64,000 bases of DNA from sequence record NC_049850.1. One strand, given 5' to 3'. Shown here piece after piece: positions 43,415 to 62,561 of the stretch. Within the stretch, counting starts at the first letter, position 1; each line of letters begins with the position of its first letter. The notes under the pieces were generated by a model. That model was given only the letters and a program-made list of their open reading frames with translations. It was not told the origin of the DNA and made no database searches. A program made the translations under genes and the position numbers.

Positions 43415-43426
43415 AGAGGTGTACTG

Positions 43427-44071: not shown

Positions 44072-44580
44072 GCCAAGCTATCTACGCGCGAATCCTGTAC
44101 GACGAGATTCGCATGATGGACCCGAAGTCTGGTCTCTATGTCTGGTGTGATCCGGACGAGGCTGGAGTTCTGGAGGTTCAGCGCATACTGCACGGCGCTC
44201 CGTTTAAAGTGGAAAACAGTACGGAGTACCACGTAACGGTTCTGTATCACGAGGGCAAGATGCCTGAGCGCATACAGATTCCGGTAGACCGGCCGACAAG
44301 CGCGCGGCTTGCCGGATTCGAGGTGTGGCCGACTGAAAAAGGCAATGTCATGGTCCTGCGTCTGGACAGCCCGGAGCTACAGGAACTCCACGCTGAGTTG
44401 CTGCGTACCGGTCTGACCCATTCGTTTCCGGATTTCAAAGCACACCTAACGGTTGCCAAGAACGTGGACATGAACGATAGGAAAACGCTCGGCTGGTATA
44501 TGTCTCGTAATCATTACCTGAAGTACTGCCCTACCCATATCACGCTCGATGAACGTGTGAAAGCGTCGTCGCTCGCGTGA
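44068..44580 (+). CDS. acb1: anti-CBASS nuclease Acb1-like 2H phosphoesterase
   Basis: Two HxT motifs (YHVTVLY, AHLTV); GLYV, EVWPT..G..VLRLDS and G.TH.F collinear with T4 57B as I recall it. Confidence 0.75.
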   Translation: MSQAIYARILYDEIRMMDPKSGLYVWCDPDEAGVLEVQRILHGAPFKVENSTEYHVTVLYHEGKMPERIQIPVDRPTSARLAGFEVWPTEKGNVMVLRLDSPELQELHAELLRTGLTHSFPDFKAHLTVAKNVDMNDRKTLGWYMSRNHYLKYCPTHITLDERVKASSLA

Positions 44581-44957: not shown

Positions 44958-44996
44958 AAAAGCCCCACAAGGAACTCAGTCCTTGTGGGGCTTTTT
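44958..44996. terminator. bidirectional terminator between convergent genes
   Basis: 16-bp stem AAAAGCCCCACAAGGA / TCCTTGTGGGGCTTTT. Confidence 0.85.
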
Positions 44997-45397: not shown

Positions 45398-47287
45398 CTA
45401 GATTACCGGAATAGGGTTGCTGACGCGCTGTGCCAAAGACGTGTAGCTGATCTCCATGTTTGCTACCTCTATGGAAAGTGGCACAGAGTCTGTTGCACGC
45501 GCGATGCCGTAAGACAGAGTTGCGGCACCCGATCCCATGGCTCCCGAGTAGTTCACCACGGGCTTGGAGTCGCGCCACACCTGAAGAGTGCCCTGCGAGC
45601 CCAGCACTACGTGCATCACGTAGTTCACCCAAACGCCTCGTTGTAGAAGCGCATCGGAGTACTGAATGATTGGTATGACATCGGTGGACGCTTGGGTCCG
45701 TATAGAAAGCGTATCCTGCGCCACGTCCATGGTCAGCGTCTTGGTCGAGGCATCGCGGTCCAGCCCGAATACAGAGCACTGGGACGCTGTGCCTATGGTT
45801 CCCGAATCGATCCTGAGCGCGAAGCTGAACCAAATGTCGGTGCCCGTGTTGAGCGTGGCCGTATCGACAAGATCGGCGCGATCAATCGTTGTGGGGTCCG
45901 AAACATCACGGTCACCCGGATTCACCAAGAACTGCTGGGCCGACTGCCTGTTACGGGCCTCCGTGTAGCCACCCAGTACACCGCGCACCGCCATTTGCCG
46001 CCCCGATACTGTACGCACAGTGGTGGGGCCGAACGTCAGCGTGTAGTTGATCGGCCATACGGCTTCCGCGAATCGCGTTGCGTACGCGCTATCGACGTTC
46101 GGTGCGAGTACAACCACCGATTCGATGGCCAGCGATCCATACTGGGGCACCGGAATCGTATAGCCGTCTGGTGTGGCAACCACTTGTCGAGACCACACAC
46201 CACCGTCACGCCCCTGAATCGCGAGCGTGTAGCCGCCATTCGGAATGAACAGTTTGGTCGTGGATGCGGCGCGCGTTGTCGCCACAAACGCTGTGTTGTC
46301 CGAAGCATTTGCCCCGTCCTCGATCTGCGGCTTCGAAATTTCGACGGTTATGGAGAACGGGTCCGTGTCGTTGGTTGTGGCAATCACAAGGGCTACGGAC
46401 ATCTGATCGCCTGCGATAGCCGAGTTCCAGATGCTGACGCGGCGACGCCCGTATGCGGGAAGCACCGTGTACGATGCGGCTCGCGCATTGCCCGTTTTGA
46501 GCACAACGCCGGTAGCCACGCCCCCAACGTTCAGCACGTTCACGGTCGCTGCGGTTGTGAGGCCGCCACGAGTCAGCGTGGGTGCCGTGCCTGAGCCGCT
46601 GTTGAAGCTGAGCGGAACGCCCGCTGGGCTTGCCCCAGTACGCGTGAACCTGATCTGAAGTTTCGGGCCGACCTGCAAGACCTCCCACAGAAGTGTAGGA
46701 TCGCTAACTGTCCAGCCAGTTGGTAGTGAGCCGCCGTTTGCGGACGTGCCGATCACAGCCCCTGCGAAAGTGGGGTTGGTGATCAGGTTGCTTGTACCGC
46801 GCTGGACCATCAACCGGCCATCATCGTCGCGATCATCAACTGTCTGGTTGAATGTCTCGAACGGGTATGCCAGATCACGATAGCGCCAAAAGCGCCCAGC
46901 CATAAAGTCTGCTTTGTACAGTGATGTGCGCGCCGTATTCTGGTGCGCTGTGCTAACAAACATCGGATCGATGAAGAGGTTACCCTTCGTATCGATCTTC
47001 AGTTCTTGTCGTGGGACCACGGTGCCGAGTGTGCTATCCGTAGCCACGTCTGAGCCACGCAATTCCCAGACGGGGGCTTTGTACAGCACGCCATCGCGAT
47101 ACAGGGGAACGGTGTCGTCGGCTTGTAGCGGGATCGAGGCTTGCGCCATGGAGCCAGTGTAGAGCGTGTCTAGCGCAGAACCTACCGTACCCGATTCGTG
47201 TCCGATCAGCGTAGAGCCGTTCGGCGCGCGCAGCCACGCGGCAATGCGCTGCCGGAAACTCTCGTACAGTGCTGGTATGGAGTACAT
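45398..47287 (-). CDS. fibre/spike protein with C-terminal polysaccharide-lyase-like jelly roll
   Basis: GRLMVQ..TSNL and CBM-like middle; DIWFSF...WVNYVMHV...GTLQVWRD. Confidence 0.5.
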   Translation of the reverse strand: MYSIPALYESFRQRIAAWLRAPNGSTLIGHESGTVGSALDTLYTGSMAQASIPLQADDTVPLYRDGVLYKAPVWELRGSDVATDSTLGTVVPRQELKIDTKGNLFIDPMFVSTAHQNTARTSLYKADFMAGRFWRYRDLAYPFETFNQTVDDRDDDGRLMVQRGTSNLITNPTFAGAVIGTSANGGSLPTGWTVSDPTLLWEVLQVGPKLQIRFTRTGASPAGVPLSFNSGSGTAPTLTRGGLTTAATVNVLNVGGVATGVVLKTGNARAASYTVLPAYGRRRVSIWNSAIAGDQMSVALVIATTNDTDPFSITVEISKPQIEDGANASDNTAFVATTRAASTTKLFIPNGGYTLAIQGRDGGVWSRQVVATPDGYTIPVPQYGSLAIESVVVLAPNVDSAYATRFAEAVWPINYTLTFGPTTVRTVSGRQMAVRGVLGGYTEARNRQSAQQFLVNPGDRDVSDPTTIDRADLVDTATLNTGTDIWFSFALRIDSGTIGTASQCSVFGLDRDASTKTLTMDVAQDTLSIRTQASTDVIPIIQYSDALLQRGVWVNYVMHVVLGSQGTLQVWRDSKPVVNYSGAMGSGAATLSYGIARATDSVPLSIEVANMEISYTSLAQRVSNPIPVI

Positions 47288-47296
47288 AGGAATCCT

Positions 47297-47515
47297 TTAA
47301 GTGCAAATACAAATTACAGGTACTTTGGGGGCAACCACGGCTTCCGTGATGACTTCTACCCACTGCTTACGCACCCGTGTGGATGCTGGGTAAGTAGTGA
47401 GTGAGTCGGTCACAACCTCCACATAACTCTTACGGACTCCAGTGGAAGCCGCAAGTGTAGAATTCGTAACCACCTCACCGTACACCTTACTTACTTGTGT
47501 GGTAGGCGTAGCCAT
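47297..47515 (-). CDS. 72-aa protein of three tandem beta repeats
   Basis: VSKVYGEVVT / VRKSYVEVVT / VRKQWVEVIT. Confidence 0.6.
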   Translation of the reverse strand: MATPTTQVSKVYGEVVTNSTLAASTGVRKSYVEVVTDSLTTYPASTRVRKQWVEVITEAVVAPKVPVICICT

Positions 47516-47517
47516 GA

Positions 47518-48555
47518 TTAGTCACCCATACCGACCTGTGCCGCGTTGACGCTGGTAACAGTCCATGCGCTACCTGCGCTGTCCCGCGTGAACACATCGG
47601 AGTACACAACGTTCGTGCCCACCAGCGAGCGCACTGCACCCGGGACCACGGTTCCGTTCGACTTTATCTGGGCCGTAACCGAGTGTTGAGCGTCGGCCCC
47701 GGGGTTCGAGGCACAGGTGTTGACGACAACGGCGTTTACGTTTTGGGCTGCATATGGAAGCGCGCTCATCGTGTACAGATCAGACTTACCTGTCGTCGCG
47801 TCTGTCAACGTCGCAGTCCCGGTCCACGGCTGCGATGCCACCTGCCAGTTGGCCCCGGCGCTGGGCGCGAATTGAGTGCTATCACCAGCACCAGCAGGGT
47901 TCATTAGGCCGATACGACGCGCGCCCACCGGAAACGTGTTGAAATCGGTGCCTGTGGTGTCCCAGATCAGGAAGTCGTCCAGATACGACAGGTTGTTGCT
48001 CGTCGTGTAGTCGGTGCCGATAAACAGCGTCGGTATCACCTGTGCAGGATGGTTGCTCAGGTTGTACGTACCACTGAATTGCTGAACACCATCCACGTAG
48101 GCCGTCACCTGAGAGTTGGCCCCGTTCAGCGTGAACGAGACTTCGATCCAGTGATAGCCATCACCCAAATACGTGGTGCCAGTTGCTACAGGTGTCGTCG
48201 TGTTGTTGTGCAACGTCAAATAGCTGCCGTTGTACGACAATAGCGTGGCATTGGGGAGGCTGACCAAGCAGTACTTTGGGAGGTTGCTGCCGCCACCGCC
48301 ATTCAAGCGCAGCCTCCACCAGCCTGCCACATAAAACGTGGAGCCAGATGCAATACCAGAGCCGGGCAGATCGCAGCGTAGCGAGGCCGCGTATCCAGCT
48401 GTGTTGTTGCAGAAGGCACGGCCGCCGAAGCGGCCATTTGTTGGGTCTATACCAGCAGTACCAGCAGGCGTCGCGACCTGCTTGTACTTGCCGCTGTTCG
48501 TAACGTCGGTGATCGTCGTGTACGAATCCCAGCCTTCAGAAAATAGGAGTGCCAT
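47518..48555 (-). CDS. ConA/laminin-G-like lectin protein
   Basis: N-terminal FSEGWD, HWIEV..., YVDG..Q and YLDDFLIWD; C-terminal P.GAGDSTQF.P domain. Confidence 0.6.
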   Translation of the reverse strand: MALLFSEGWDSYTTITDVTNSGKYKQVATPAGTAGIDPTNGRFGGRAFCNNTAGYAASLRCDLPGSGIASGSTFYVAGWWRLRLNGGGGSNLPKYCLVSLPNATLLSYNGSYLTLHNNTTTPVATGTTYLGDGYHWIEVSFTLNGANSQVTAYVDGVQQFSGTYNLSNHPAQVIPTLFIGTDYTTSNNLSYLDDFLIWDTTGTDFNTFPVGARRIGLMNPAGAGDSTQFAPSAGANWQVASQPWTGTATLTDATTGKSDLYTMSALPYAAQNVNAVVVNTCASNPGADAQHSVTAQIKSNGTVVPGAVRSLVGTNVVYSDVFTRDSAGSAWTVTSVNAAQVGMGD

Positions 48556-48564
48556 ATTCTTTCC

Positions 48565-50571
48565 TTATCGCGTGCCGTTGAGCGTGATCGATACGCCGCT
48601 AAAAGTCGTGTCCGTGACGCCCGCAGCGAACGTCATCACGTCGCCTGCTGCAAACGTGACCGGGTTCGATATGTTCACGGTGCCAGTCGACGAGCCCGCA
48701 GGATACGTGATGTCCCCCACCATTACACCGTTCTTGTAGATGCCTATGATCACGATGCCGGTCGTAGCCACCATCGAACTCGACAAGTTTCCGGTGATGC
48801 CGGAGAGTCCAGCAGCGAACGCCACGCTACGCGCGAATATCGTTCGGTAGAACGTAGCACCAGCTACCGGAGTTCCCGGGTAGAACGTCATGATGTCGTA
48901 CGGCTGCGGCGGTATGGTTGCTGTGGGCGGCGCTGTCCATGTGCCGTCTTCACGCAGATACCTAGTGGTGCCAGCCGTCGAACCCGGGCTCGGAACAAGA
49001 CCGTTTTTGGCGTTGACGCCGGACGGCCCGAACGTCGGAACGTTCATCTGGATCGACACGTTGTCGTTGCCATCGGCCCCGACTATGATGTTGCTGTCGT
49101 ATGCCACGATCTTGCGGAAACGAGTCTTGCCCGAGCCGTCGTTTGCGGCCGACATAACCGACGTGCCTGACGGTGCCGTGTTGTCGTAGGGTACAAGGTT
49201 CACGTTGCCGTTGCCGTCTGGCGACGCCCCGTTGACGGTCTTGACAGTTCCCGACGCCGTGATGTTGACCGTACCGTCTGCCGCCATCGACATGCCGGTC
49301 CCTAGCTTGATGCCGCCTAGGACCGTACTCGATGCTTGTGGCAGCGTGTACGGGGCCGGTATAGTAGGCAGTCCTAGCAAGTCTGAGTAGTTGCCAGTCT
49401 TAGCCACGGTGGCCAGATTCTGAACGTCGCTGGCTCGAATGGTCAACACATAGTTGCCTGTGTTGTCTGGGGCCGTCCCATTGATGCTAAGCACACCCAA
49501 GTTTGTGATCGTACTGTTCGTATAGTCGATCCCACGGCCTGCCGTGATGCCTTGACCCAAGTTCGAGCGTATATCGTCGAGCACCGCCTGAAGGTTCTTG
49601 CCGTAAGTAGTGCCAACGAGTGCTGCGCCACCTGCGCTACCCAGATCGGATTCAGCCACCACGTCAGCGATCCGGAGTGCGTTGATCTCGACCGTGACGA
49701 GCGGCGCTCCGGCCACGACCATGGCCGCGACTTCGGGGGCGAGCACGATCTGAACGCCGCCCGTGCCGTCATAGGCCAGTCGTTCGAGATATGCACCCAT
49801 CAAATAAACGTCAACGACGTTCGGGGTAAAGCCGCCGGGTATCACGAACGTGCCCTGACCATCGGCGGTCGCGTACACGATCTTGATGGTGCGTCGGTTC
49901 AGGTCCCCACTCACTATCAGGTTATCGTTAGGATCACGATCGATTGTGATGTTGGCACCCGCTACCAGTGTTCGGAACTTCATGCGCGCGTCATGCGCGC
50001 CAGAGTCCGAGATCAACGAGTTGCCGGTTCCGGGGTGTGCATCGACAGCCTCGATGGTGAGACTGCCGTCCCCCATTGGGTACATGTCGTTGATACGAAG
50101 GACGCCTGTGTTATTGACCCTGATGGTGCTGCCCGTGTTGTCGATGCCGATGCCGGGGCCGCCCTCGATCACCACCTCGCCTGTCTTGTTGTTGACACTG
50201 GTGACAATACCCTTGATGGGCATTGGATCAGTAGTCGAGTGCACGACGAACGTGATCTGCACTACTGCGGTGTCAGTGTCCGAGCGGTTGGTGATGAAGA
50301 ACTGATCTACCGGATCGTCAATGGACAGTTGCTGATCGACCGCTACTGCTGTTGGGGTTCCGGTCCCTACCACAGTCGACACAAACACAGGCTTGTCCGT
50401 GCTGATCGTGAGCGCCGAGAACCCAACATCCGCATCCCATTGCTGCCCCGGCTTCAGGACAATAGTCTGGTTGATGGTCTGATTGGCGTAGTACTTTGCC
50501 ACCAGATTCTCGTTGATGACTGGAACACCGGAGCCGCGAGTGCCTGTCTTGATTACGAAGCTGTCGCCCAT
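48565..50571 (-). CDS. 668-aa accessory fibre protein
   Basis: VTSVN..TG, LATVAKTGNYSDL and TLPQAS..LGGIK fibre repeats; C-terminal PYDI tip domain. Confidence 0.7.
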   Translation of the reverse strand: MGDSFVIKTGTRGSGVPVINENLVAKYYANQTINQTIVLKPGQQWDADVGFSALTISTDKPVFVSTVVGTGTPTAVAVDQQLSIDDPVDQFFITNRSDTDTAVVQITFVVHSTTDPMPIKGIVTSVNNKTGEVVIEGGPGIGIDNTGSTIRVNNTGVLRINDMYPMGDGSLTIEAVDAHPGTGNSLISDSGAHDARMKFRTLVAGANITIDRDPNDNLIVSGDLNRRTIKIVYATADGQGTFVIPGGFTPNVVDVYLMGAYLERLAYDGTGGVQIVLAPEVAAMVVAGAPLVTVEINALRIADVVAESDLGSAGGAALVGTTYGKNLQAVLDDIRSNLGQGITAGRGIDYTNSTITNLGVLSINGTAPDNTGNYVLTIRASDVQNLATVAKTGNYSDLLGLPTIPAPYTLPQASSTVLGGIKLGTGMSMAADGTVNITASGTVKTVNGASPDGNGNVNLVPYDNTAPSGTSVMSAANDGSGKTRFRKIVAYDSNIIVGADGNDNVSIQMNVPTFGPSGVNAKNGLVPSPGSTAGTTRYLREDGTWTAPPTATIPPQPYDIMTFYPGTPVAGATFYRTIFARSVAFAAGLSGITGNLSSSMVATTGIVIIGIYKNGVMVGDITYPAGSSTGTVNISNPVTFAAGDVMTFAAGVTDTTFSGVSITLNGTR

Positions 50572-50599
50572 AATTATCTCCGTTATGATGCTCTACTAA

Positions 50600-50609
50600 C
50601 TAAAATTAC
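50600..50609 (-). promoter_or_regulatory. class B motif GTAATTTTAG
   Basis: About 30 nt upstream of minus-strand ORF 50571; a second copy CCAATTTTAG at 50686-50695. Confidence 0.4.
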
Positions 50610-50614
50610 ACACC

Positions 50615-50643
50615 AAAAGAAAAACCCGGCTCGGGGCCGGGTT
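50615..50643 (-). terminator. intrinsic terminator
   Basis: AACCCGGC / GCCGGGTT stem with a U-rich tail on the minus strand. Confidence 0.7.
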
Positions 50644-50729
50644 CTTCTGCGTGCCGCCTATTAATGTACCCATTGCATAGATACACTAAAATTGGCTGTT
50701 CGGTTATTGCCAATACAGGGCCCTATTCG

Positions 50730-51848
50730 CTACGCGGTTGGCAATTCTGCGTTTACGGTCATGCCAAAACTACAGGTTCCGAAGCCTCCTAGTAGTTGGT
50801 TACCGGCAGGCAAGTTCAGGCGCACTGCGTTGTTCGTCTGTGAGGCCACGGTCGGATTGCCTGAGCTAAGGTTGGATACAGACACACCGCTGAACGCAAG
50901 CGTCGGGTTGCTGATACGCTTGTACTCGTACTGCGCCGTCATCTGCGGAACCTGTCCGTTGCCTACCTGTCCGGACCACGCGAAAGGTGTTCCAGAGAAC
51001 GCTTCGTAGTAGAACAGACAGTCGTTGAGCATGGACGCTAGGTCGCGAAACTCGTAGCCCGTAAATTGCGGCCCGAACTCAAGCTGAACTTCAGACAGCA
51101 GCGCCGTGAACGTGCCGGGAGACGCAGCAGTAGCAATCTGCAATCTCAGGTAGTGGTTGGTCCCCAGAGTTTTGCCCACAACCGAGGGCAGCGCAAACGT
51201 CTGCTGACACCGCGTCCACGTGTTGGCGGCCACCGCTATAGCCGAGCCCGCAAGCGCCACCGTCGACGAGCCGCCACTCCCGAAGTTCTGGAATAGCGAA
51301 GGCGTAAACGACATGGCCTTAGTCGTGTTCACGTAGAACGACACGGTTACGTTCTGGCCCGCTAGTGTTGACACGTCATTTATGGACTGCGAAACATACG
51401 GAGTGCCGGTGCCAGATGTTTCTTGCCACGACAGATAGCTGATCTCGTTATTCGAGGTTCCTGTGGCCATGCTGACCGTAGCCCCGTTGCTGAACATGTA
51501 CCAACGATCAGCCACAAACCCGGCAATGGCACCGGACGCCGGATTGCCGTACTGGTTGAGCCGGAAGCGCCCGTTGATGACACGGTTCTTTATAGAGCCA
51601 AGCGCGAAGTTGCCTGTGCTATCTGGACTCACCCCGTTGATCGTTTTCACCAACTGGTTGGTCGTATTGGTCGACGTATAGGCGGTGGCCGTGACCGCAG
51701 CACTTGCCAGCAACCGAACTGCGCCAGACGAATCCAGCGTATAGAGGTTGGCGTCGGCGGTGTTGATGGCCAGTTGCCCGGCCACCAAGTTGTCGACAGC
51801 GGGCGGCAAACCCGCTGTCGAGTTACGAAGGTGTTTTACGACGGTCAT
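50730..51848 (-). CDS. distal fibre subunit: gp37-like N-domain plus carbohydrate-binding jelly-roll tip
   Basis: GQLAINTAD; NRVINGRF...ADRW...VQLE.G. Confidence 0.7.
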   Translation of the reverse strand: MTVVKHLRNSTAGLPPAVDNLVAGQLAINTADANLYTLDSSGAVRLLASAAVTATAYTSTNTTNQLVKTINGVSPDSTGNFALGSIKNRVINGRFRLNQYGNPASGAIAGFVADRWYMFSNGATVSMATGTSNNEISYLSWQETSGTGTPYVSQSINDVSTLAGQNVTVSFYVNTTKAMSFTPSLFQNFGSGGSSTVALAGSAIAVAANTWTRCQQTFALPSVVGKTLGTNHYLRLQIATAASPGTFTALLSEVQLEFGPQFTGYEFRDLASMLNDCLFYYEAFSGTPFAWSGQVGNGQVPQMTAQYEYKRISNPTLAFSGVSVSNLSSGNPTVASQTNNAVRLNLPAGNQLLGGFGTCSFGMTVNAELPTA

Positions 51849-51861
51849 CAGTACACCTCAA

Positions 51862-52977
51862 TTAAGTCCCGGAGTAGGTGCCCTCGTCGAGCGTCAGGAC
51901 CGAAGTGTTGACCGAAAACACACCGCCCGCAACGGAAAGGCCCGAGCCCGCCTGTGCCAGACCGAGCGCCGCTGCCGATCCTACCGGCAGATTCGCTGTG
52001 GGCACTGTGGTTACCCACGTTGGCACATTGGACGCGTTGGTGGTCAGCACCGAGTTAGCTGCGGCACCCGCACCTTCCTGCGCGGCGCTGAGCGTCGATA
52101 CCCATGTCGGGGCACCGCTACCGTTCGTGGTCAACACATCGCCGTTACCAGCACCCGAGCCGAGTTGCGCAGCCGCAAAGGTTCCGGTCGTGATGTCTGC
52201 GGCACCAAGAACAACGGTGCCCGTCTTGCCGTTGACCGACGAGACCAGCGCGGAACTCTCGACGGTTCCCCACACGGTGCCGTTCGAGATAAGCCAGTCG
52301 CCCGTGCTGAACGTGAGTGCCGGTTGGCCTGTGCCCGGAGGCGAGTACGTGCCTGCCGCAGTTGCTATGTAGTACCAACCTTGGTTGCCCGAGGCCGCAG
52401 CCGGTAGCGTACTCGTGCCCGGTACGAAAGTCCCTTGGTACTGCACGGCACCCACAATAGAAGCCGGTAGATAGGACACGGGAATCTTGCTGCCCGAATC
52501 CAGAGGTGCCACACCGTTTGCGGCACCAACGCTAGAGGTAGCGACACCGCCAAGCGTAGTGAGCGCGGCCGAGGCCGAGGCCGCCGTCAGCAGCGCGGAG
52601 CCCGTTGCCGTAGCCCCGATTGCGGTCTGCACTGCTGCGGTTGTTGCGGCCGTGAACACGCCGATACCGACTGACGTACCACCCAGCGTGTTGAGGGCCG
52701 CGCTCTGGTTGGCGGCCGTGAACAAGGCGTTACCGACCGTCGTGGCTCCCAAGTTCGTGGGAGTCAATGCCACGTTCCCCGACGACGGCGATACTCCGTT
52801 GACCGAAGTAACCGTCCCGTTCGCGCCGGAATAGAATGTGGCAATCGAGTTGTCTGCGCCAAGAATGAAGATTTTCTTGTCGGCTGCGTTGATTGCGATT
52901 TGGCCGACCACCAGTTCTGTGGTGCTCGGTACTAGACCTGCGGTGCTGTTATGCAGATGTATTAGCTTTGCTGCCAT
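51862..52977 (-). CDS. middle fibre subunit: gp37-like N-domain, Ala/Gly/Thr shaft, C-terminal LDEGTY
   Basis: GQIAINAADKK; VTSVNG; YQGTF..GQGWYY. Confidence 0.7.
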   Translation of the reverse strand: MAAKLIHLHNSTAGLVPSTTELVVGQIAINAADKKIFILGADNSIATFYSGANGTVTSVNGVSPSSGNVALTPTNLGATTVGNALFTAANQSAALNTLGGTSVGIGVFTAATTAAVQTAIGATATGSALLTAASASAALTTLGGVATSSVGAANGVAPLDSGSKIPVSYLPASIVGAVQYQGTFVPGTSTLPAAASGNQGWYYIATAAGTYSPPGTGQPALTFSTGDWLISNGTVWGTVESSALVSSVNGKTGTVVLGAADITTGTFAAAQLGSGAGNGDVLTTNGSGAPTWVSTLSAAQEGAGAAANSVLTTNASNVPTWVTTVPTANLPVGSAAALGLAQAGSGLSVAGGVFSVNTSVLTLDEGTYSGT

Positions 52978-52988
52978 TTTTGGTTCTC

Positions 52989-53543
52989 TCAGTGCCCTAC
53001 GAATGCACCCTCATTGAGGGAAGATTGGATATCCTGCCAAGCGGCATTACTTCGTACGTATACCTTACTGTCTACAGGCGCGTCTCCTATTCCGCTGATA
53101 GCGGATGTTGGTGTTATTGGGGACACGCGACTGACCAAATACATGTCCCCGTTGGTAGCAGGTTGGTTCAGAGAGATTCCAGCAGCAGTAGACGAGAACG
53201 CAGTTGTCTTGTAGCCGTTCTTGTACACAGAGAGCAGTGCAGCACCACTGTTCCCTATGGGAATGAGGTTGTCGCCGGGATTGGCAACATACAAGAAGGC
53301 GTCAGATAGCGCGAATAGCTGCTGGCATATTAGTTGGTAGTCCAGAATAAACTGCCATCTGGACTTGGTGTCCGACCACTGGTAGGCCCCGGGGCTAAAG
53401 ACGCCGACGCTTTGGGTCAGTATCAGATTGAGGCCCCTCGTATCTGGGTACGCGGGCAGCGTGTCAACCAGTGGGGCAAACGCATTTGTGATGCCACCAT
53501 TGGATCGGACTATCGAATACGGGAAAAACAGAGCGACTGACAT
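52989..53543 (-). CDS. short fibre anchor protein with foldon-like motif
   Basis: N-domain paralogous to ORF 61884; GIGDAPVDSKVYVRSNAAW; ends LNEGAF. Confidence 0.6.
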   Translation of the reverse strand: MSVALFFPYSIVRSNGGITNAFAPLVDTLPAYPDTRGLNLILTQSVGVFSPGAYQWSDTKSRWQFILDYQLICQQLFALSDAFLYVANPGDNLIPIGNSGAALLSVYKNGYKTTAFSSTAAGISLNQPATNGDMYLVSRVSPITPTSAISGIGDAPVDSKVYVRSNAAWQDIQSSLNEGAFVGH

Positions 53544-53614
53544 GATTGTTTTTAGTTCTAAGTTTGCACTTCAGTGGTGGTCTCCACGTGTACTACTGGG
53601 GCCCCCGCCCCGAT

Positions 53615-54100
53615 TTACTGCGCTGTTGCTACAAGCCGTGCAGCGGCCCCCAGCCCACTGTCAAGCGCCGGTTGATCCTGCGGAATCTCGGTACTGTTCG
53701 TGAACAGGGACCAGTTTGCATCGGCCGCTGTCTCGGTCTTGTTTGCGTCTTTGTTCTGTTCTTCAGGCGTCTTGCCGTCACGCACACCATACGCGTCGTC
53801 GAGCGCTTTCTTGGCATCGTAGAGCCGCGATTTATCCGCGCCTTGCAGATTGCGGCCCTTGCGATTGATGAACCCATTCAACTTCGAACTGGCTTCGCCT
53901 CGATCTTCTGAGTGCTGCTTGAGTTGGCGCGCGATCTCGCTGGGGCTCTCGGTGAACGTGCCCTTCGGCAATTCTGATCCTGCGCGTCGGCCCTTGCCTC
54001 GGTACTGCTGGTCCATGCGCTGCTGCCACGTCTTGTCCTGATCCTGCTTAGGCGGGTCCGTGATTTGGCGCTCAGCCAGCAGCCTATAGGCTGCTTTCAT
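53615..54100 (-). CDS. second DUF3175-like protein
   Basis: LPKGTFTESPSEIA...LNGFINRKGRNL...L.DAK; GGAGAAGG RBS before ATG 54100. Confidence 0.6.
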   Translation of the reverse strand: MKAAYRLLAERQITDPPKQDQDKTWQQRMDQQYRGKGRRAGSELPKGTFTESPSEIARQLKQHSEDRGEASSKLNGFINRKGRNLQGADKSRLYDAKKALDDAYGVRDGKTPEEQNKDANKTETAADANWSLFTNSTEIPQDQPALDSGLGAAARLVATAQ

Positions 54101-54124
54101 AACCTTCTCCATGTTCTCTGGCTG

Positions 54125-54157
54125 CAATAAAATTGGGACGCCTCAGCGTCCCAATTT
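54125..54157 (-). terminator. intrinsic terminator overlapping class B motif (54127-54136)
   Basis: 12-bp perfect stem AAATTGGGACGC / GCGTCCCAATTT right after the stop of ORF 54446. Confidence 0.7.
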
Positions 54158-54158
54158 G

Positions 54159-54446
54159 TTAAGTCGCCGATGTATCGCTTGGCGGTACAGGCAATAGCTG
54201 TAGTATGTAGGCCGTGTACGGCCGCACAATTGTCGTGTTGCCTATGTGCTCGGTCTCGTAGTACGTACGCTCATCGTAGTGCAGTTCACGACTCGTACCA
54301 AGTGCCGCTGGATCGAGTATCAGGACCCCATAGTTGAACTCGATTAGGTAGTCGTCCGGAACACTTGCGAGTACGTCAGGCCACTCTGTTTCGTCCCACG
54401 TCGCTACGTAGAACGTTTTGCTTATATCATCCTTGTAGGTGTCCAT
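54159..54446 (-). CDS. hypothetical protein
   Basis: 95-aa acidic ORF with AAGGA RBS. Confidence 0.55.
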   Translation of the reverse strand: MDTYKDDISKTFYVATWDETEWPDVLASVPDDYLIEFNYGVLILDPAALGTSRELHYDERTYYETEHIGNTTIVRPYTAYILQLLPVPPSDTSAT

Positions 54447-54455
54447 ATGTTCCTT

Positions 54456-54821
54456 TTAACTCGGTGTGAACCAAGTAATAGTGGTCATTGGTTTAGCTGG
54501 GTCCAAGGTTGTCTGCGCTATGACCTCCAGCGTAACACCACTGTCTTGTGTGGTATACGGAAGGCCCGCTATGACTTCCATGGATACACCATAATCGTTT
54601 GCCGGAATTAGGCCGGACGCCAACACCTCCATTTGAACCGCATAGTCATTCGCATTGAGCGGGGGTATGATCAGGACTTGTCGTGCTACAGCCTGACTCT
54701 TAACCGCCGATGACTGCGACAGTAGAACCTGCCGCGCTACTGCCCTAGCAGTAGACGCGGGAGATTGAACCGTGAGTAGCTGTCTGGCTAGGGCTTGGGC
54801 CTTTACTGGGTTACCTGCCAT
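54456..54821 (-). CDS. 121-aa protein of six tandem beta repeats
   Basis: AQALARQLL / AVARQVLL / AVARQVLI, then NDYAVQMEVLA / NDYGVSMEVIA / QDSGVTLEVIA. Confidence 0.6.
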   Translation of the reverse strand: MAGNPVKAQALARQLLTVQSPASTARAVARQVLLSQSSAVKSQAVARQVLIIPPLNANDYAVQMEVLASGLIPANDYGVSMEVIAGLPYTTQDSGVTLEVIAQTTLDPAKPMTTITWFTPS

Positions 54822-54835
54822 GGGCTACTCCGTGA

Positions 54836-57088
54836 TTACGTTATGTGGTTCAAAGCAAACTGCGAGGCTTTGATCGAGTTGGTGGTCCACGCCTTGTTGC
54901 CGTTCGGATCGATATCAGACAGAACCGACACGTATGTAGGAGTCGTACCTGACACCGTGACTTGCGAACTGTCCGTTTCAGCACCGCTACTCCGCAACCC
55001 GACGCTAACAACCGGGGCCGTGGTCGAGGTTTTGGTGAAATACGTCTCCACCAACTGTGCCCGAGCCGTATAGCCTGCCGGAATCGTGTCTGCCGAAGAG
55101 TACACGTCAACGTCTCCGGAGTTCGAGGACGCTACGTTCTTCGAACTCAGGCTCGATAGTGCAGCCTGATTCACTGCGCTGGCGTTAGTGCCCGAGCCAC
55201 CGGTCGGGACCCATTGGGCCTGAACATCGGCATTGGGACGCTGAACCGCGATGTTGATTTGACCGAGGTTACCGCTAAGGCCGGTGCCGTCTTCGAGCGT
55301 CACGTAGATATCGTCGATTGCGGTAAAGCACCCCGAACGTTGGAAGCCGATCAGGAACAGGCCCGTCGTGTCGATGTTGCGTGTGAACTGATAGGTGAAC
55401 TTCGAGCCGATCTGCACACCGTCAATGTACATGTACACATCGAACTGGTTGACTGACGCGCTGTTCTTGACATACCGCATTTCGAAGTAGTGATACAGGT
55501 TCGACGTTGCAGACAGCGATCCTGTCAGATACGTTGTGCTGTTTCCTACCGAATCCAGAATACCCCACTGACGATTGCCACCAGAGGCCCCCGCCACGAA
55601 TAGGTGCAAGAATCCACCGTACGTGTTGAAGACCGTAAACTGGCCGTTCGCGGCGGGCGCTCCGGATGCAGATACCACCAGACCGCTGCCAACACCACCT
55701 GTCAATCCAGTTGCTGTGGCGTCGAGCGCCTCGTATACGTTCAGCGCCTGCCAATTGGTCACCATGTCTGGGGTGGTGGCGATAATACCGGTAACGGAGC
55801 TTGAGAACAGTACGTATTTGCTACCGTCATACAGATAATTTGTATAGCCGCCGGTCGCGACGTTCGTGAGTGGAGTGCCCACCAGAGTCCATGTAACACC
55901 ATCTAGTGTGCTGTATACCGACCCACCGTTTGTCACCGCATAGAGCGTGCTGCCGACCAGTATAAGCTGGGTCGGCAGTACTGGCAAACTCAGACCCAGC
56001 GTCATCGTCACTGTTCCGGACAGCGGACTAGGCGTTCCGGGAGTGCCGCCCGGATTGGCCGCGTACATAAGGCCCATGTTCGTGGCAAACACATAGCGAT
56101 TCGCAGCGGGCAAGAACGCCATATCCGTAATGTAGTTACCACTTGGACCCGGTGCCGTCCAACCCGTGGCGGTCACCGTGAAGCTGGTCCACGCGCCCGA
56201 TGTGTTCAGCGCTGAGTTTGCGGCAACTGCCATCAGCCCGTAACCGGAGTAGAAAAGAGCAACAACACCACTGCTACCGCCCAACAAACGACTTACGGTA
56301 GAAACCGCGTTAATGGCTTGAGTTGCACCGCCCCCGCTCGACGCTAGGGTAAAGTTGCCAGCGCCCTTCTTGGCGTCCCCCACCATTGCATACATGATGC
56401 CCTGAAATCCTGAACTGGTATTGGATATCACTGGAACAACATGAGGAAACGCCGAGTTGCCGGTGTCCACTGGACACATTGGGCTGGAAACCGACGCACT
56501 CGGAGTGACTGGTAGTGCTACGTTAGTCCAAGACGAACCGTTATTCGTTGAGTAGTTTATAGCCGTCGTATTAGTGCTTGTGTTGGAGACAACCAGCGGC
56601 ACGCTAGACGTTTGGGAGTACGTCATAGCTAGGGCACCAGATATCTGTGCTGGCGTGTCCGTCCAGTTGATCAGGTCTGGCGACGTGCTGATGTTCGTGC
56701 CTGTTGCCCGACGGAACCCCCAGTAACGGGTTCCGTCAAAACCGCACCCTTGGCCCAGTGCTGCGCTAACGTAATACCCAGCGTTGCTGTTGAGTTTGGC
56801 ACCAAAACCGAGTGTGATACCGCCCGCGTTCCAAGCCTGTTGAACTGTGTAGCCCGTATTGTAGTATCCCCACGTCTGGTCAGCAGCAGCGCCCCACAGA
56901 GCCGACGATGCAGCAGACGACTGAAACGCACCCACGGGACGCAGTGACGTTCCCGGGACGTTAGTAACGCTAGGCGCAAACGTCACCTTCTTGGTTGTGG
57001 GAGCCTGTGGGGAAACGCTCCAGTTTTGCAGCCGCAGGTCGCTGTCGTCGCGGGTCGTTTCAAAACCCTGCATGTATTTGAGACTCAT
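54836..57088 (-). CDS. LamG-like lectin with inserted Asp-box beta-propeller
   Basis: N-terminal MQGFE; YHYFEM...YIDG..IDDIYV; Asp-box-like STNNGSSW and STLDGVTW. Confidence 0.55.
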   Translation of the reverse strand: MSLKYMQGFETTRDDSDLRLQNWSVSPQAPTTKKVTFAPSVTNVPGTSLRPVGAFQSSAASSALWGAAADQTWGYYNTGYTVQQAWNAGGITLGFGAKLNSNAGYYVSAALGQGCGFDGTRYWGFRRATGTNISTSPDLINWTDTPAQISGALAMTYSQTSSVPLVVSNTSTNTTAINYSTNNGSSWTNVALPVTPSASVSSPMCPVDTGNSAFPHVVPVISNTSSGFQGIMYAMVGDAKKGAGNFTLASSGGGATQAINAVSTVSRLLGGSSGVVALFYSGYGLMAVAANSALNTSGAWTSFTVTATGWTAPGPSGNYITDMAFLPAANRYVFATNMGLMYAANPGGTPGTPSPLSGTVTMTLGLSLPVLPTQLILVGSTLYAVTNGGSVYSTLDGVTWTLVGTPLTNVATGGYTNYLYDGSKYVLFSSSVTGIIATTPDMVTNWQALNVYEALDATATGLTGGVGSGLVVSASGAPAANGQFTVFNTYGGFLHLFVAGASGGNRQWGILDSVGNSTTYLTGSLSATSNLYHYFEMRYVKNSASVNQFDVYMYIDGVQIGSKFTYQFTRNIDTTGLFLIGFQRSGCFTAIDDIYVTLEDGTGLSGNLGQINIAVQRPNADVQAQWVPTGGSGTNASAVNQAALSSLSSKNVASSNSGDVDVYSSADTIPAGYTARAQLVETYFTKTSTTAPVVSVGLRSSGAETDSSQVTVSGTTPTYVSVLSDIDPNGNKAWTTNSIKASQFALNHIT

Positions 57089-57097
57089 ACGTATTCC

Positions 57098-58240
57098 TTA
57101 ACGAGAAGTCTGGCCGAACTCTCCGGCATTCAGACTGGCTGTTGTCCAAGGGTTCGTGCCGTCTGTTTCCGCCACCGATAGATAGCGCGACGGGCCGTTC
57201 GATGTTGTCATTTGCGTCACACCGGACGAGCTTGATGTTTTGAAAGACCCCTGAATGTTCTGATACCGATTCGAGTTGCCACGCATCACGACCGCACGCA
57301 CATCGGATACCGCTGGCACGTTCCACTTGTAAGTGTCCGTCTGACCGGTAGCCGTTGCCGTGACGTAGTTAGCACCCGTGGTATCAGTTGCCGACTGCCA
57401 GTTGGGCTCTGCACCAGATGGAGTCCACTGGGTGACCGATCCGTTGCCAGTTGCCGAGACCGCGTAAATACGGCGTGCCGTGATAGCGGGTTCCGTTTCC
57501 GGGGTCGGCCACACACCAGCACCGAGAGGCCACGCGGCGTCCGCACCCGAAACGTTCTGAACCACGAGGTCATCAACGAAGTAGCTGATGAAGTTCGAGG
57601 CGAAGAACTTGAGGCGGTTCGCGATCTGCCCTGCCGTGAAGTTGTCTGCACTCCACGTCACCGGAATATCCTGCTGCAACGTCGTGCCGTTGATAGTGTA
57701 CGTGGCAGTCAGGACAGCCGACGATGCAGTCGATGTCGTGCTGTAGTACGAGAACTGAAGCTGTACCCAGTAGTACGTGTTCAACTGGATGTTGAAGTTG
57801 TACGGAGAACTGGTCGGGCTGTTGATGTTGGTTACGAACTGGAGGTTCGTGCCGCCCGACGACGAATTGCTGATGTTAAGGAGCGGATACCACGAGCCCG
57901 GAACGCCTGCGGTGCCGAGCGCGAGCAGCGTGCCCGAGCCCGGGTTCATGGTGCCCACGTTCAGCCAGAAGTTGAACGCGAACGCGGCCTTACCGCTGGT
58001 GGCAGTGTTCCCGCGAATCATCTGCATGGTCGACGGGAACTGGTACTCAAAGCCCGAGGTCAGGGACGCCGGAGCGCCCGACACCGGGAACGTAAGCGCC
58101 GCACCGCCAAATGCACCAGCCGACAAGTTCACCTGTCCGGCTATCGAGCTATTCGTCACGAACCATGGGTAGTTTGCGGCAAGCGTGCCCGAAGGGTAGA
58201 TGTCAAACCCCTCGGCCGCTGCAATAAATTGTGCTGCCAT
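57098..58240 (-). CDS. ConA/laminin-G-like lectin protein
   Basis: N-terminal AEGFD; YYWVQ...FVDDLVV; C-terminal GNGSVTQWTP..PNW domain paralogous to ORF 48555. Confidence 0.6.
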   Translation of the reverse strand: MAAQFIAAAEGFDIYPSGTLAANYPWFVTNSSIAGQVNLSAGAFGGAALTFPVSGAPASLTSGFEYQFPSTMQMIRGNTATSGKAAFAFNFWLNVGTMNPGSGTLLALGTAGVPGSWYPLLNISNSSSGGTNLQFVTNINSPTSSPYNFNIQLNTYYWVQLQFSYYSTTSTASSAVLTATYTINGTTLQQDIPVTWSADNFTAGQIANRLKFFASNFISYFVDDLVVQNVSGADAAWPLGAGVWPTPETEPAITARRIYAVSATGNGSVTQWTPSGAEPNWQSATDTTGANYVTATATGQTDTYKWNVPAVSDVRAVVMRGNSNRYQNIQGSFKTSSSSGVTQMTTSNGPSRYLSVAETDGTNPWTTASLNAGEFGQTSR

Positions 58241-58250
58241 TTGTTACTCC

Positions 58251-59546
58251 TTATTGCCACGTGCCACGGATGGTGATGGTGATGAGCGAAACGTTCGTCG
58301 TCGCAAACTGATAGGACAACTGATCGCCTGCCGCGTAATTGGTTGTGCTACCCGTGCTCGTAAACGAGTTGCCGTTTACCGTGTCGATGTTGAGCGTGCC
58401 GACCTGCGTACCCGTATTCGGAGTGGCCGCCGGGTACTTCATGATGCGTATGGTTGCGGTCGTGCCACTGAGTAGCCGCACGTTTGCCACCGAATTCGCC
58501 CAGTTCTGCGGGAACTGGCACGGGTCCGTGAACATGTAGAACACTTCGTTCACGATGTTCGGGTTGCCCTGAACGTTGACGGGCAGACGCGCGATGCTCG
58601 GGTTGGGCGGTTGGTTCAGCAGGTCCGTGTAGGAGCCAGTGAGCGCCACCGTCGACAGCGTACCCGACGCGAGGTTACCTGCGGTCGCTGCGGTGTTCGT
58701 GAACTGCACGCCACCCAGCGTCGCGGTCGTTGCCTTGGGCAGCGAATACGGCGTAGGCTTGTTCGACAGGTCGTTGTAGTTGCCGGACGTGGCGACGGTC
58801 GCAAAGCCCGCGATGTCGGTAGCCGTCAGCGTGACCGTGCCAGTCTTACCGTTCACGGACGTGACGTTGGAGCCCGAGTTAGCGATCTTCGTCCACACGT
58901 TGTTCGACACCAGCGCCAAGTCACCGACAGCCCACGTGCTGATGCCGTCGATTGACGTAGAGCCCGCAACCGATACCACGTAGTACGAACCGTTTGCCTG
59001 CGCAGTGCCACCAGCAACACCACCGTTCGCGAGAACCGGGTTGTTCGCGTTAGCGTCCCAGTTCCCCTTATACGATAGGCCGCCCGTGATAGACGAGGGC
59101 AGGTATTTCGATGCGACAGTACCAGACGGGCCCGAAAGCAAGTCGGTAGGCAGACCAACGTCTGCGGCCGTAAGCGTCACGGTGCCCGAGCGCGAGTTGA
59201 CGGATACGACACCTGCGTTGGTAATGTTGCCGTTCGAGTCCACAGCCAGACCGCCGCTGGCCGGAACCATCACACCCCCGAGCACCGCTGCCGACGCTTT
59301 CGGGAGTACGTAATTGCCAGCCGACGGTTTGTTGGTCAGGTCGTTGTAGTTGCCGGTGAACGCCACCGTAGACAGATCACCCGGACCCAGACCGATCTCC
59401 TGAATAGCACCCGTGTTGTCGAGTGTGTACAGTTTTCGGTCTGGGAAGTTGATGGCCAACTGGCCGGTGAGTATCTGCGCCGTGGTGGGGCGAGCACCAG
59501 CGGTCAGCAGCCGTGGGTGCTGAACCGGGATGTTAAGAGCAGTCAT
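58251..59546 (-). CDS. fibre subunit: gp37-like N-domain, shaft repeats, tip domain
   Basis: AGARPT...GQLAINFPDRKLYT; TGNYNDL repeats; tip paralogous to the C-terminus of ORF 50571. Confidence 0.7.
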   Translation of the reverse strand: MTALNIPVQHPRLLTAGARPTTAQILTGQLAINFPDRKLYTLDNTGAIQEIGLGPGDLSTVAFTGNYNDLTNKPSAGNYVLPKASAAVLGGVMVPASGGLAVDSNGNITNAGVVSVNSRSGTVTLTAADVGLPTDLLSGPSGTVASKYLPSSITGGLSYKGNWDANANNPVLANGGVAGGTAQANGSYYVVSVAGSTSIDGISTWAVGDLALVSNNVWTKIANSGSNVTSVNGKTGTVTLTATDIAGFATVATSGNYNDLSNKPTPYSLPKATTATLGGVQFTNTAATAGNLASGTLSTVALTGSYTDLLNQPPNPSIARLPVNVQGNPNIVNEVFYMFTDPCQFPQNWANSVANVRLLSGTTATIRIMKYPAATPNTGTQVGTLNIDTVNGNSFTSTGSTTNYAAGDQLSYQFATTNVSLITITIRGTWQ

Positions 59547-61884: not shown

Positions 61885-61889
61885 AGTTC

Positions 61890-62561
61890 TCACCACGTGA
61901 ATGCGGCGTTAGCCGAGTTGAGGCTTGGCATGCGTTGTTGAACAAGCTGTGTCAACGCTTCGCCCTGAGCCCCGTTTATTTTTTGTGTAACCGCCGTGTA
62001 TGCGTCCTGATCTGCGAGTGCGCTCAGCCCGTTCTGGCTCCAGTACCAACCGGCACTCATGAACAGATCGGCAGCTTGCGTCACAAGGTCAGGATTGCTG
62101 ACGACGCGCGTGTCCCCGTAGATGGCTTGGCTGTATGCCGTGTAGTTCGAGCGCCCCGTCAGGTGGAATGCACCTCGCCCGCGAAACAGCCAGCCATCAC
62201 CAGAAGCCACGTTGCCGTTGCCCATGCGCGAGGCATAGACCAGATTCGCAAGCTTCTGCGGGTTGCCAACATAGCTCGGCGCATACGCCTTGCTGGTATC
62301 GGCTTGGTTCATGGTGAACCGCGAAGGCCACACGGCGACCAGCCGTTCCGGCGTCGTGTAGTTCAAGTTCTCCACGAGCTTCGAGAAGCCCGCAGTCTCG
62401 TACGCGGCTTGCGCCATGAAATAACGCACACGGCGCGGACTCGCGTCGATACCGAATTTTGCCATCGCCGTGTTTGCTGCGTCTGCCATCCCCTGAAGCT
62501 GTGCGGCCGGAATTTGTGGCGCAAATTTTGCGAGTTGCGCGCTCGTGATTGCGTATGCCAT
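61890..62561 (-). CDS. glycoside hydrolase family 19 endolysin
   Basis: FMAQAAYET..F..L.ENLNY, GDGW.FRGRG..LTGRSNY and SAGWYW. Confidence 0.88.
   Translation of the reverse strand: MAYAITSAQLAKFAPQIPAAQLQGMADAANTAMAKFGIDASPRRVRYFMAQAAYETAGFSKLVENLNYTTPERLVAVWPSRFTMNQADTSKAYAPSYVGNPQKLANLVYASRMGNGNVASGDGWLFRGRGAFHLTGRSNYTAYSQAIYGDTRVVSNPDLVTQAADLFMSAGWYWSQNGLSALADQDAYTAVTQKINGAQGEALTQLVQQRMPSLNSANAAFTW

Follow-up and report, generated by a model that had tools for sequence, protein, structure and literature searches.

Host range is set by receptor-binding assemblies, and the multi-component or branched ones are known from few model systems. In phages of the T2/S16 type, gp38 is a separately encoded adhesin that sits on the trimeric fibre tip and sets receptor specificity. 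CBA120 tailspikes, G7C gp63.1/gp66 and the hyperbranched fibres of phiKp24 form branched receptor-binding complexes (PMC9700779; references in PMC12796354). The long tail fibre gp015 of Agrobacterium phage 7-7-1 is a trimer with a distal triple jelly roll (PDB 9RKV), and a small 'garland' protein with the adjacent gene number, gp014, binds distal domains of the fibre (PMC12796354). The Alteromonas phages A5, V22 and P24 carry a fibre and its cognate chaperone as a module found across phage families (PMC10579305). Here we analyse a stretch of 64,000 nucleotides (nt), called the window, which is 100% identical to bases 124001-188000 of Burkholderia phage BcepSaruman (NC_049850/MK552140), a 263.7-kb jumbo myovirus infecting B. 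cenocepacia. The window holds two diverged copies of what is probably a receptor-recognition cassette, in which a fibre gene ending in a tip domain is followed by genes for LamG-family proteins and for a small repeat protein. Module A comprises gp271, gp270 and orf72, and module B comprises gp280, gp279, gp278 and gp277.

By analogy, the cassette would work like the known multi-component receptor-binding assemblies, but with a different proposed docking element. No sequence match to the cassette proteins was found in the known assembly families (tip adhesins, tailspike branches, the 7-7-1 garland). As with the gp38 tip adhesins (mentioned in 10.1101/2021.03.08.434494), the putative adhesin is a separate protein whose gene adjoins the fibre gene; gp38, however, has another fold and is a single small adhesin without tandem paralogues or a repeat protein, and no sequence or fold match to it was seen. 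The branched complexes are similar in mounting several specificities through dedicated docking modules and are typical of large phages, but they consist of trimeric tailspikes on N-terminal globular domains, whereas the branches proposed here would be two-domain ConA-like proteins used with a short linear repeat. The Alteromonas module is also a fibre with a small downstream gene that moves between myo-, sipho- and podovirus-type phages, although its downstream protein is IMC-domain-like and transient, without a ConA-like fold or repeats. The closest parallel is provided by genes 0024-0028 of Achromobacter phage vB_AchrS_AchV4, here AchV4 (Casjensviridae; PMC7996906), which encode a tip fibre, LamG proteins and then a repeat-bearing protein. 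In contrast to BcepSaruman, AchV4 is a siphovirus, its proteins are annotated only as 'virion structural protein', and the repeats lie within a protein of 578 amino acids (aa) rather than in a mini protein.

Two diverged cassettes in the BcepSaruman fibre region

Every gene from about 45 to 63.4 kb of the window lies on the minus strand. The region opens with a lysis block (holin, antiholin, GH19 endolysin), after which a long run of fibre-type genes has the order gp281, gp280, gp279, gp278, gp277, gp276, gp275, then gp274, gp273 and gp272, and finally gp271, gp270, orf72 (72 codons, unannotated), gp269 and gp268. The gaps inside modules A and B measure 2-14 nt. All seven open reading frames (ORFs) claimed in a preliminary description of this DNA are present on the minus strand, with their starts where it had placed them. 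The features of the two modules are as follows, with the evidence in brackets (HMM, hidden Markov model; AF2, AlphaFold2 model; L numbers denote loci used for comparison).

48565..50571, minus strand: gp271, fibre of module A, 668 aa, with a repeat-rich shaft and a C-terminal jelly-roll tip (ORF, BLASTP, phrog_7049)
48568..48924, minus strand: tip domain of gp271, about residues 550-668 (BLASTP to the L003 tip; gp280-type tip HMM)
47518..48555, minus strand: gp270, two-domain beta-sandwich protein of 345 aa (phrog_2448, AF2, Foldseek)
47297..47515, minus strand: orf72, unannotated repeat protein of 72 aa (repeat-unit HMM, conservation in BcepSauron)
58251..59546, minus strand: gp280, fibre of module B, 431 aa, annotated 'putative long tail fiber' (ORF, PHROG, BLASTP)
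58254..58598, minus strand: tip domain of gp280, residues 317-431 (relatives search, AF2, PDB fold match)
57098..58240, minus strand: gp279, LamG-family paralogue of 380 aa (BLASTP, family HMM)
54836..57088, minus strand: gp278, remodelled LamG-family member of 750 aa (phrog_30887, phrog_2448, family HMM)
54854-55651, minus strand: LamG-family C-terminal portion of gp278, residues 480-745 (HMM alignment)
54456..54821, minus strand: gp277, repeat protein of 121 aa (17-residue register, orthologues)

The fibres of the two modules end in related tip domains. BLASTP gives no alignment between the gp271 and gp280 tips, and a three-sequence tip profile was too shallow to recover gp280. Larger profiles link them in both directions: an HMM of 20 gp280-type sequences, drawn from among 1.8 billion representative proteins, matches residues 565-668 of gp271 (E 1.8e-7), and an HMM of 11 gp271-type sequences, none of them gp280-like, matches residues 322-426 of gp280 (E 1.3e-5). 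In these non-circular searches of 514 window ORFs, the opposite tip is the sole other match in each direction. The paralogy of the tips put forward in the preliminary description is thereby upheld, although the domain is about 105-115 aa long and not about 95. The gp280 tip has 22 relatives among the same representative proteins. A third tip fibre, gp287 (811 aa), lies just outside the window (L001 23447-24247; L030 744-3179; record 188743-191178) and carries the same domain (E 3e-12, gp280-type HMM). The domain is C-terminal in gp271, gp280, gp287 and the 22 relatives with three exceptions, namely P0046 (83 aa), which is a partial protein, and P0050 and P0051, which are weaker matches with the domain internal. 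Residues 548-662 of gp271 match phrog_7049 ('tail fiber protein'), and its repeat-rich shaft segments are common to gp281 and gp280 by BLASTP.

The monomer of the gp280 tip is predicted by AF2 to be a 10-strand beta-sandwich (mean predicted local distance difference test, pLDDT, 94.2). Its best fold match in the PDB is 9rkv_N (template modelling score, TM, 0.69, E 1.7e-6, root-mean-square deviation 2.7 A), with chains M, N and O scoring best. The resemblance to gp015 of phage 7-7-1 thus extends to both fold and C-terminal position, but the aligned structures are only 15-17% identical, no LamG-family partner is described for the 7-7-1 fibre, and its garland is made up of small homodimers. The tip profile finds nothing at E<=1 among PDB chain sequences, and sequence searches of the same chains gave no homology between the garland protein and orf72 or gp277. 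The RcGTA tail fibre Rcc00171 was considered as a homologue of the short tip fibres and rejected; its paper describes a pyocin-like knob and foot, and there was no PDB match.

The second component is the LamG family. BLASTP aligns gp270 and gp279 over their full length (E 5e-8, 26% identity), and a family HMM built without gp279 and gp278 matches residues 1-377 of gp279 (5e-14) and 480-745 of gp278 (9e-10), with no further match in the window. Pairwise HMM comparison, proposed earlier as a check on paralogy, therefore links both the tips and the LamG proteins, and the common C-terminal domain claimed for the three lectins is real. Among PHROGs, phrog_2448 matches gp270 at full length (residues 3-343, E 2.3e-17) and gp278 at residues 521-744 (E 5e-18); gp279 has no match. 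The motif [EQ]G[FW][DE], said to start the lectins, occurs within the first 15 residues of gp270, gp279 and gp278 and of no other of the 164 ORFs that reach 100 aa, but it sits at residues 7-13 and not at the very start. As a whole gp278 belongs to phrog_30887 (full length, 3.7e-110), and it is 32-35% identical over its full length to ORF183 and ORF184 of Ralstonia phage phiRSL1. It is built from the family N-terminal motif, an insert of about 400 aa and the family C-terminal two thirds (profile positions about 89-345); a full-length LamG-family match was not obtained, the likeness being confined to residues 480-745 and the N-terminal motif. The insert has one Asp-box-like motif, and gp278 gives a weak Sortilin-Vps10 match. 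The C-terminal domain is the best conserved part of the family and the part kept in gp278.

An AF2 model of gp270 from a 29-sequence alignment (mean pLDDT 90.8) shows a ConA/LamG-like jelly roll at about residues 1-205 and a second beta-sandwich at 215-345. Foldseek gives 324 PDB matches at E<=0.001 with TM 0.3-0.58, indicating the generic ConA-like superfamily. Among the matches listed are Teredinibacter domains of unknown function, PL14, alginate and glucuronan jelly-roll lyases, Cip1, carbohydrate-binding modules (CBMs), calreticulin and the lectin-like Hc-N subdomains of clostridial toxins. Matches in BFVD are full-length, with TM up to 0.86, and come from uncharacterised proteins of many phages, several with multiple gp270-like copies each; one is an AchV4 'virion structural protein' (TM 0.77). 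The N-terminal domain of gp270 thus has the fold of the ConA-like lectin/glucanase superfamily (Laminin_G_3, PF13385 clan), but it is fused to a family-specific second sandwich and its Pfam score lies below threshold. The homologues P0010 and P0012 carry a precomputed PF13385 match. Six residues of gp270 are invariant in the family (H135, W136, E138, Y153, D155, G156); we take them to lie in the strand pattern typical of LamG folds generally, and no catalytic constellation was identified among them. For gp270, gp279 and gp278, 'lectin' is an assignment by fold. In a comparison of BcepSaruman with BcepSauron, codons 13-115 of gp270 (window 48211-48519) hold 9 of its 10 amino-acid changes and 31 of its 45 synonymous ones. 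Diversifying selection in the first third of gp270 was considered and rejected, since synonymous changes cluster there too; this stretch is a recombination patch in the ConA-like domain.

The third component is a small repeat protein, which the preliminary description placed in both modules. In module A it is orf72, with three 12-residue repeats at a spacing of 19-21 aa (x-V-x-K-x-[YW]-x-E-V-[VI]-T) and a hydrophobic C-terminal strand with Cys. This ORF is annotated for neither BcepSaruman nor BcepSauron in RefSeq/GenBank. It is nevertheless a real, missed gene, because a repeat-unit HMM made of foreign sequences only finds it as the sole match among the 514 window ORFs (E 2.2e-9, 3 units), because it is conserved in BcepSauron at equal length with 2 synonymous and 1 non-synonymous change, and because it starts 2 nt past the gp270 stop. 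With at least three motif units directly after a LamG gene it belongs to the repeat family. It has no PHROG match itself; a 67-aa member in L004 matches phrog_13560 (8e-6). In module B, gp277 has six repeats spaced at exactly 17 residues, of which the first three differ in flavour from the last three, and it too has a hydrophobic strand at its C-terminus. Its orthologues are a 120-aa protein of phage BCSR5, ORF185 of phiRSL1 (41% identity, E 4.5e-9) and two copies of 92-93 aa in L037. The original and iterated orf72-type unit HMMs score gp277 at E 14 or worse, the repeat-unit HMM likewise gives no match to the BCSR5 orthologue, and BLASTP of orf72 against gp277 yields nothing useful. The two are alike in size, position, 17-aa period and an x-[EQ]-[VL]-[LI] core. 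Both modules do carry a repeat protein at the same position, but homology between the two, judged from sequence, is plausible and unproven.

Searches with gp277 and the mini profile in a set of 5.8 billion proteins returned 5 and 4 matches, probably because such small ORFs are rarely called. The gp277 relatives P0052, P0053 and P0055 (62-82% identity) bear the species labels of Enterococcus faecalis or Staphylococcus aureus, marked 'partial', and lie on contigs shorter than 1.3 kb; they are probably contaminant phage reads in those assemblies. PDB chain sequence searches with the mini profile, gp277 and two repeat-bearing large proteins gave no meaningful relatives, and neither did those with gp270, gp278, gp280, gp271 and the LamG profile.

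Although the gene order does occur twice, 'duplicated' is a misleading word for it. The tip of module A shares 39-41% of its residues with those of L003 and L010 (41% and BLASTP 9e-21 for the 237-aa fibre of L003) versus 16% with the tip of module B, and gp270 is 37% identical to the LamG proteins of L003 and L010 versus 26% to gp279. Module A has relatives in a Caballeronia prophage and Burkholderiales metagenome-assembled genomes. Because module A is closer to cassettes of Burkholderiales prophages and siphophages than to module B, sequence comparison indicates that the two did not arise by recent duplication but belong to old, distinct lineages of a mobile cassette. The order of module B is kept in BCSR5, phiRSL1 and the metagenomic relatives L031, L032 and L037, and each module-B relative has the tip gene directly in front of its first LamG-family gene. 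Orthologues of gp279 follow gp280-like fibres in L031, L032 and L037 (56-72% identity) and in BCSR5 (55% by alignment). L037 has two gp278-like genes, each followed by its own three-repeat mini gene. The lysis-then-fibre layout of BcepSaruman recurs in phiRSL1 (AB366653, 111450-122343; L033/L034) as GH19 ORF181, ORF182, gp278-like ORF183 and ORF184, gp277-like ORF185 and gp275-like ORF186, all annotated hypothetical; ORF182 combines the equivalents of gp281 and gp280 in one protein of 1586 aa.

Recurrence of the cassette and its homologues in virions

Synteny in relatives, another check proposed at the outset, shows the same order in about 25 independent loci in myophage, siphophage and prophage contexts, including L003, L004, BCSR5, L006, AchV4 and L010-L029; the census of further loci covered viral contigs and genomes. 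In L003 a 237-aa tip fibre is followed by a 351-aa LamG protein and a discoidin-domain protein that ends in three orf72-type repeats and the same C-terminal strand. In L004 the order is a 249-aa tip fibre, a LamG protein, the 67-aa mini protein with three repeats and a second LamG protein. Each locus has 1-4 tandem LamG paralogues; of about 24 loci found with LamG seeds, 12 have a recognisable tip gene directly upstream. Three of the tip-less arrays are preceded instead by a different short protein of 200-228 aa. Distant homologues of gp270 occur right behind the large central fibre protein in tail modules of RcGTA/phiJL001-like siphophages.

The repeat motif lies immediately downstream in most census loci. 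It takes three forms there: a mini protein of 67-149 aa, the C-terminus of CBM-like proteins, and the N-terminus of proteins of 375-883 aa. Examples of the second kind are the F5/F8 discoidin protein of L003 (212 aa) and a protein with a CBM-like domain in L028 (245 aa), and of the third kind proteins in L014, L016, L017, L019 and L021 and AchV4_0028. Among 3131 locus ORFs, no significant repeat-HMM match lies on the opposite strand to the cassette or upstream of the LamG genes, and most start right after the last of these; the L014/L018 pair lies further downstream, and the match in L029 is in a frame overlapping the LamG gene itself. Both loci seeded with the mini profile, L035 and L036, have a LamG gene directly upstream. 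Two simple rules for the repeats were rejected. Repeats are not three times as many as LamG genes (L004 has two genes and three repeats, L006 three genes and six repeats), and type-a repeats are not paired with gp279-type proteins, as phiRSL1 has type-a-like repeats and no gp279.

Across 13 cassettes, identity between tips correlates with identity between the adjacent LamG proteins (r 0.76, Mantel 0/5000), and on these sequences the fibre tip and the LamG protein are inherited together. The cassette occurs in Burkholderia and Ralstonia jumbo phages, Casjensviridae, RcGTA-like siphophage tails and prophages; it is widespread, horizontally exchanged and travels as a unit. None of its three families (tip knob, phrog_2448, phrog_13560-like) has a function assigned in PHROGs or Pfam.

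The preliminary description had named absence of the lectins from virions as the result that would speak against it. In the homologous cassette of AchV4 they are present. AchV4_0024 is a 240-aa tip fibre (tip HMM 1.6e-6), and AchV4_0025 and AchV4_0026 belong to the LamG family (HMM 1e-23 and 5e-21). These three proteins were identified in purified virions by liquid chromatography with tandem mass spectrometry with 13, 22 and 14 peptides, respectively (PMC7996906 Table 1), the two LamG proteins at 75% and 35% coverage. AchV4_0027 has the N-terminal motif of the family, with a fold match in BFVD that is weaker (TM 0.37), and the N-terminus of the 578-aa AchV4_0028 is a run of related short repeats.

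Proposed attachment and role of the LamG-family proteins

Our best explanation, which we hold with moderate confidence as a whole, is that modules A and B are two diverged copies of a receptor-recognition cassette whose LamG proteins are accessory adhesins docked through the repeats. The cassette itself and the virion location of its proteins are much firmer parts of this picture than attachment to the tip and the adaptor role. That the three gene types form a functional unit is supported by the recurrent order, co-inheritance and virion homologues, but gp287, the tip-less arrays and the repeat fusions weaken its strict form. The evidence likewise supports the view that the LamG-family proteins would be virion-borne accessory adhesins. 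In the proposed mechanism, the variable ConA-like domain of the model may contact a surface polysaccharide or glycosylated structure of Burkholderia, and the conserved C-terminal domain would dock the proteins on the adsorption apparatus, most likely on or beside the upstream-encoded fibre knob. The short repeats would be docking strands that tie subunits together, and in other phages the same repeats would hold additional binding domains, or entire receptor-binding proteins, in place. Two fibre sets would then present several binding specificities.

The repeats look like a linear docking element because they come mostly in threes and are fused elsewhere to binding domains or large proteins. 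The motif would seem to be a general means of docking further binding proteins, more so than an adaptor reserved for linking tip to lectin. A bolder proposal, which we make tentatively and regard as doubtful, is that repeats of 17-21 residues with the core x-[KQ]-x-[YWV]-x-E-V-[VIL], usually found in sets of three, are a portable docking code that has so far gone unrecognised. A partner with three-fold symmetry (the fibre knob, or else a trio of LamG C-terminal domains) would receive three strands from a single chain, and any repeat-bearing cargo (mini protein, discoidin/CBM domain, receptor-binding protein) could plug onto the LamG-decorated fibres.

Several observations weigh against docked accessory adhesins. 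The tip fibre gp287 stands alone between oppositely oriented replication genes, without a LamG or mini neighbour. Upstream of about half of the LamG arrays there is no recognisable tip gene, and in one siphophage the LamG gene lies in the baseplate block, right behind the tape measure region. Repeat count and LamG gene count are in no fixed ratio, and the repeats in discoidin/CBM-like and 375-883-aa proteins conflict with a dedicated adaptor if that is taken strictly. Pfam Laminin_G_3 (PF13385) scores gp270 at 24.1 bits, below the gathering cutoff of 27.6, and does not match gp279 or gp278. PDB searches found no solved structure related in sequence to the LamG family or the repeat proteins. 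AchV4_0027 and AchV4_0028 are not among the proteins detected by mass spectrometry (PMC7996906), and a literature search found no virion proteomics of BcepSaruman, BcepSauron or phiRSL1 ORF182-185.

The first three of these points are what would be expected if the LamG proteins attached independently to the baseplate or tail tip and not to the neighbouring knob. Clustering would then be the usual grouping of host-range genes, and the repeats would anchor themselves or other receptor-binding proteins to the baseplate. The homologue in the third point lies between the tape measure and the large baseplate genes, and the repeats at the N-terminus of large proteins, the usual virion-anchor position of receptor-binding proteins, fit such a layout too. 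This is a serious rival, even if on balance we think it unlikely. Tip and LamG sequences co-vary strongly across cassettes, and in 12 seeded loci, as in every module-B relative, the gene next upstream encodes a tip. In addition, module A as a whole (tip, LamG, mini) is nearer to the prophage cassettes, as expected for co-fitting parts.

It is distinctly less probable that the LamG and/or mini proteins are fibre chaperones or caps (Tfa, T4 gp38, IMC-like) that assist knob trimerisation and are absent from the particle or partly retained in it. Their genes lie directly downstream of the fibre gene, the classic place for a chaperone, and phage families trade fibres together with their chaperones (PMC10579305); the mini proteins are small enough for such a role, and the lack of virion peptides from AchV4_0027 and AchV4_0028 agrees with it. 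However, AchV4_0025 and AchV4_0026 are so well represented in virions that a chaperone role for the LamG proteins is unlikely, though the mini proteins taken by themselves may still have one. Arrays of up to four diverged paralogues, a 750-aa gp278 and the fusion of repeats to discoidin/CBM-like domains also suit diversified binders better, and chaperone families (Tfa/gp38/IMC-like) in Pfam and PHROG gave no match for gp270, gp279, gp278, orf72 or gp277.

That the LamG proteins are instead enzymes degrading capsule or exopolysaccharide (ConA-like jelly-roll polysaccharide lyases or glycanases) is similarly improbable, for although their top PDB fold matches include PL14 and other jelly-roll alginate/glucuronan lyases and Cip1, the family member P0025 has a precomputed Polysacc_lyase Pfam match and gp269 weakly matches the same family, the TM scores are modest and are matched by those for lectins without enzymatic activity, CBMs and the receptor-binding subdomains of toxins, no catalytic residues stand out among the invariant ones, and such an activity is compatible with virion attachment and so overlaps our best explanation.

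Surroundings and significance

The remaining features of the fibre region are as follows.

45398..47287, minus strand: gp269, 629 aa, next gene in module A (weak Pfam and LamG HMM matches)
59560..61896, minus strand: gp281, fibre protein of about 775 aa directly upstream of gp280 (ORF, BLASTP, phiRSL1 comparison)
50618..50648, minus strand: terminator-like hairpin of 13 pairs with a T-run, between gp272 and gp271 (consensus scan)
44958..44995, no strand: hairpin of 16 pairs with A-runs/T-runs at its sides, bidirectional terminator-like, just past gp268 (consensus scan)

The two hairpins, both strong, bracket gp271-gp268, so that module A may be its own transcription unit. Membership of gp269, which follows orf72, in the cassette is uncertain. 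It has a LamG/ConA-like domain at about residues 450-595, with a Pfam Polysacc_lyase score of 26.8 bits, below cutoff, and a weak LamG HMM match at residues 477-595. At the equivalent position BCSR5 has a collagen-like fibre with a tip domain.

Five fibre genes share N-terminal domains of two kinds. The N-terminus of gp274 (52989-53543) resembles that of gp281 (E 4e-11), and gp272 (50730-51848), gp273 (51862-52977) and gp280 have a common N-terminal domain of about 80-100 aa (phrog_1699 N-terminus). From their sequences, these are probably attachment domains. In BcepSauron (L002 7434-7883 versus window 50730-53543), gp273 and gp274 are gone and gp272 is a 149-aa C-terminal remnant. The loss is one deletion touching three fibre genes, and the remaining region is 97-100% identical to BcepSaruman. 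The annotation places a 'tail collar protein' and an 'RNA ligase' shortly ahead of the fibre block (gp264-gp266, 41678-44580, plus strand). Farther away, a 512-aa protein (17584-19122, plus strand) has a tail of about 250 residues alternating acidic (D/E) runs with PAPKKGKK-like basic repeats, and this tail accounts for the AT-skew peak at 18-20 kb.

The cassette brings together three uncharacterised protein families, and orf72 adds a missed gene to the annotation of two reference genomes. If the docking code were true, host-range modules of myoviruses and siphoviruses, perhaps of podoviruses as well, would have a common plug-and-socket. Should the LamG proteins be accessory adhesins docked through short repeats, a large block of 'hypothetical' fibre-adjacent genes would be explained, and receptor-binding proteins could be better predicted from sequence.

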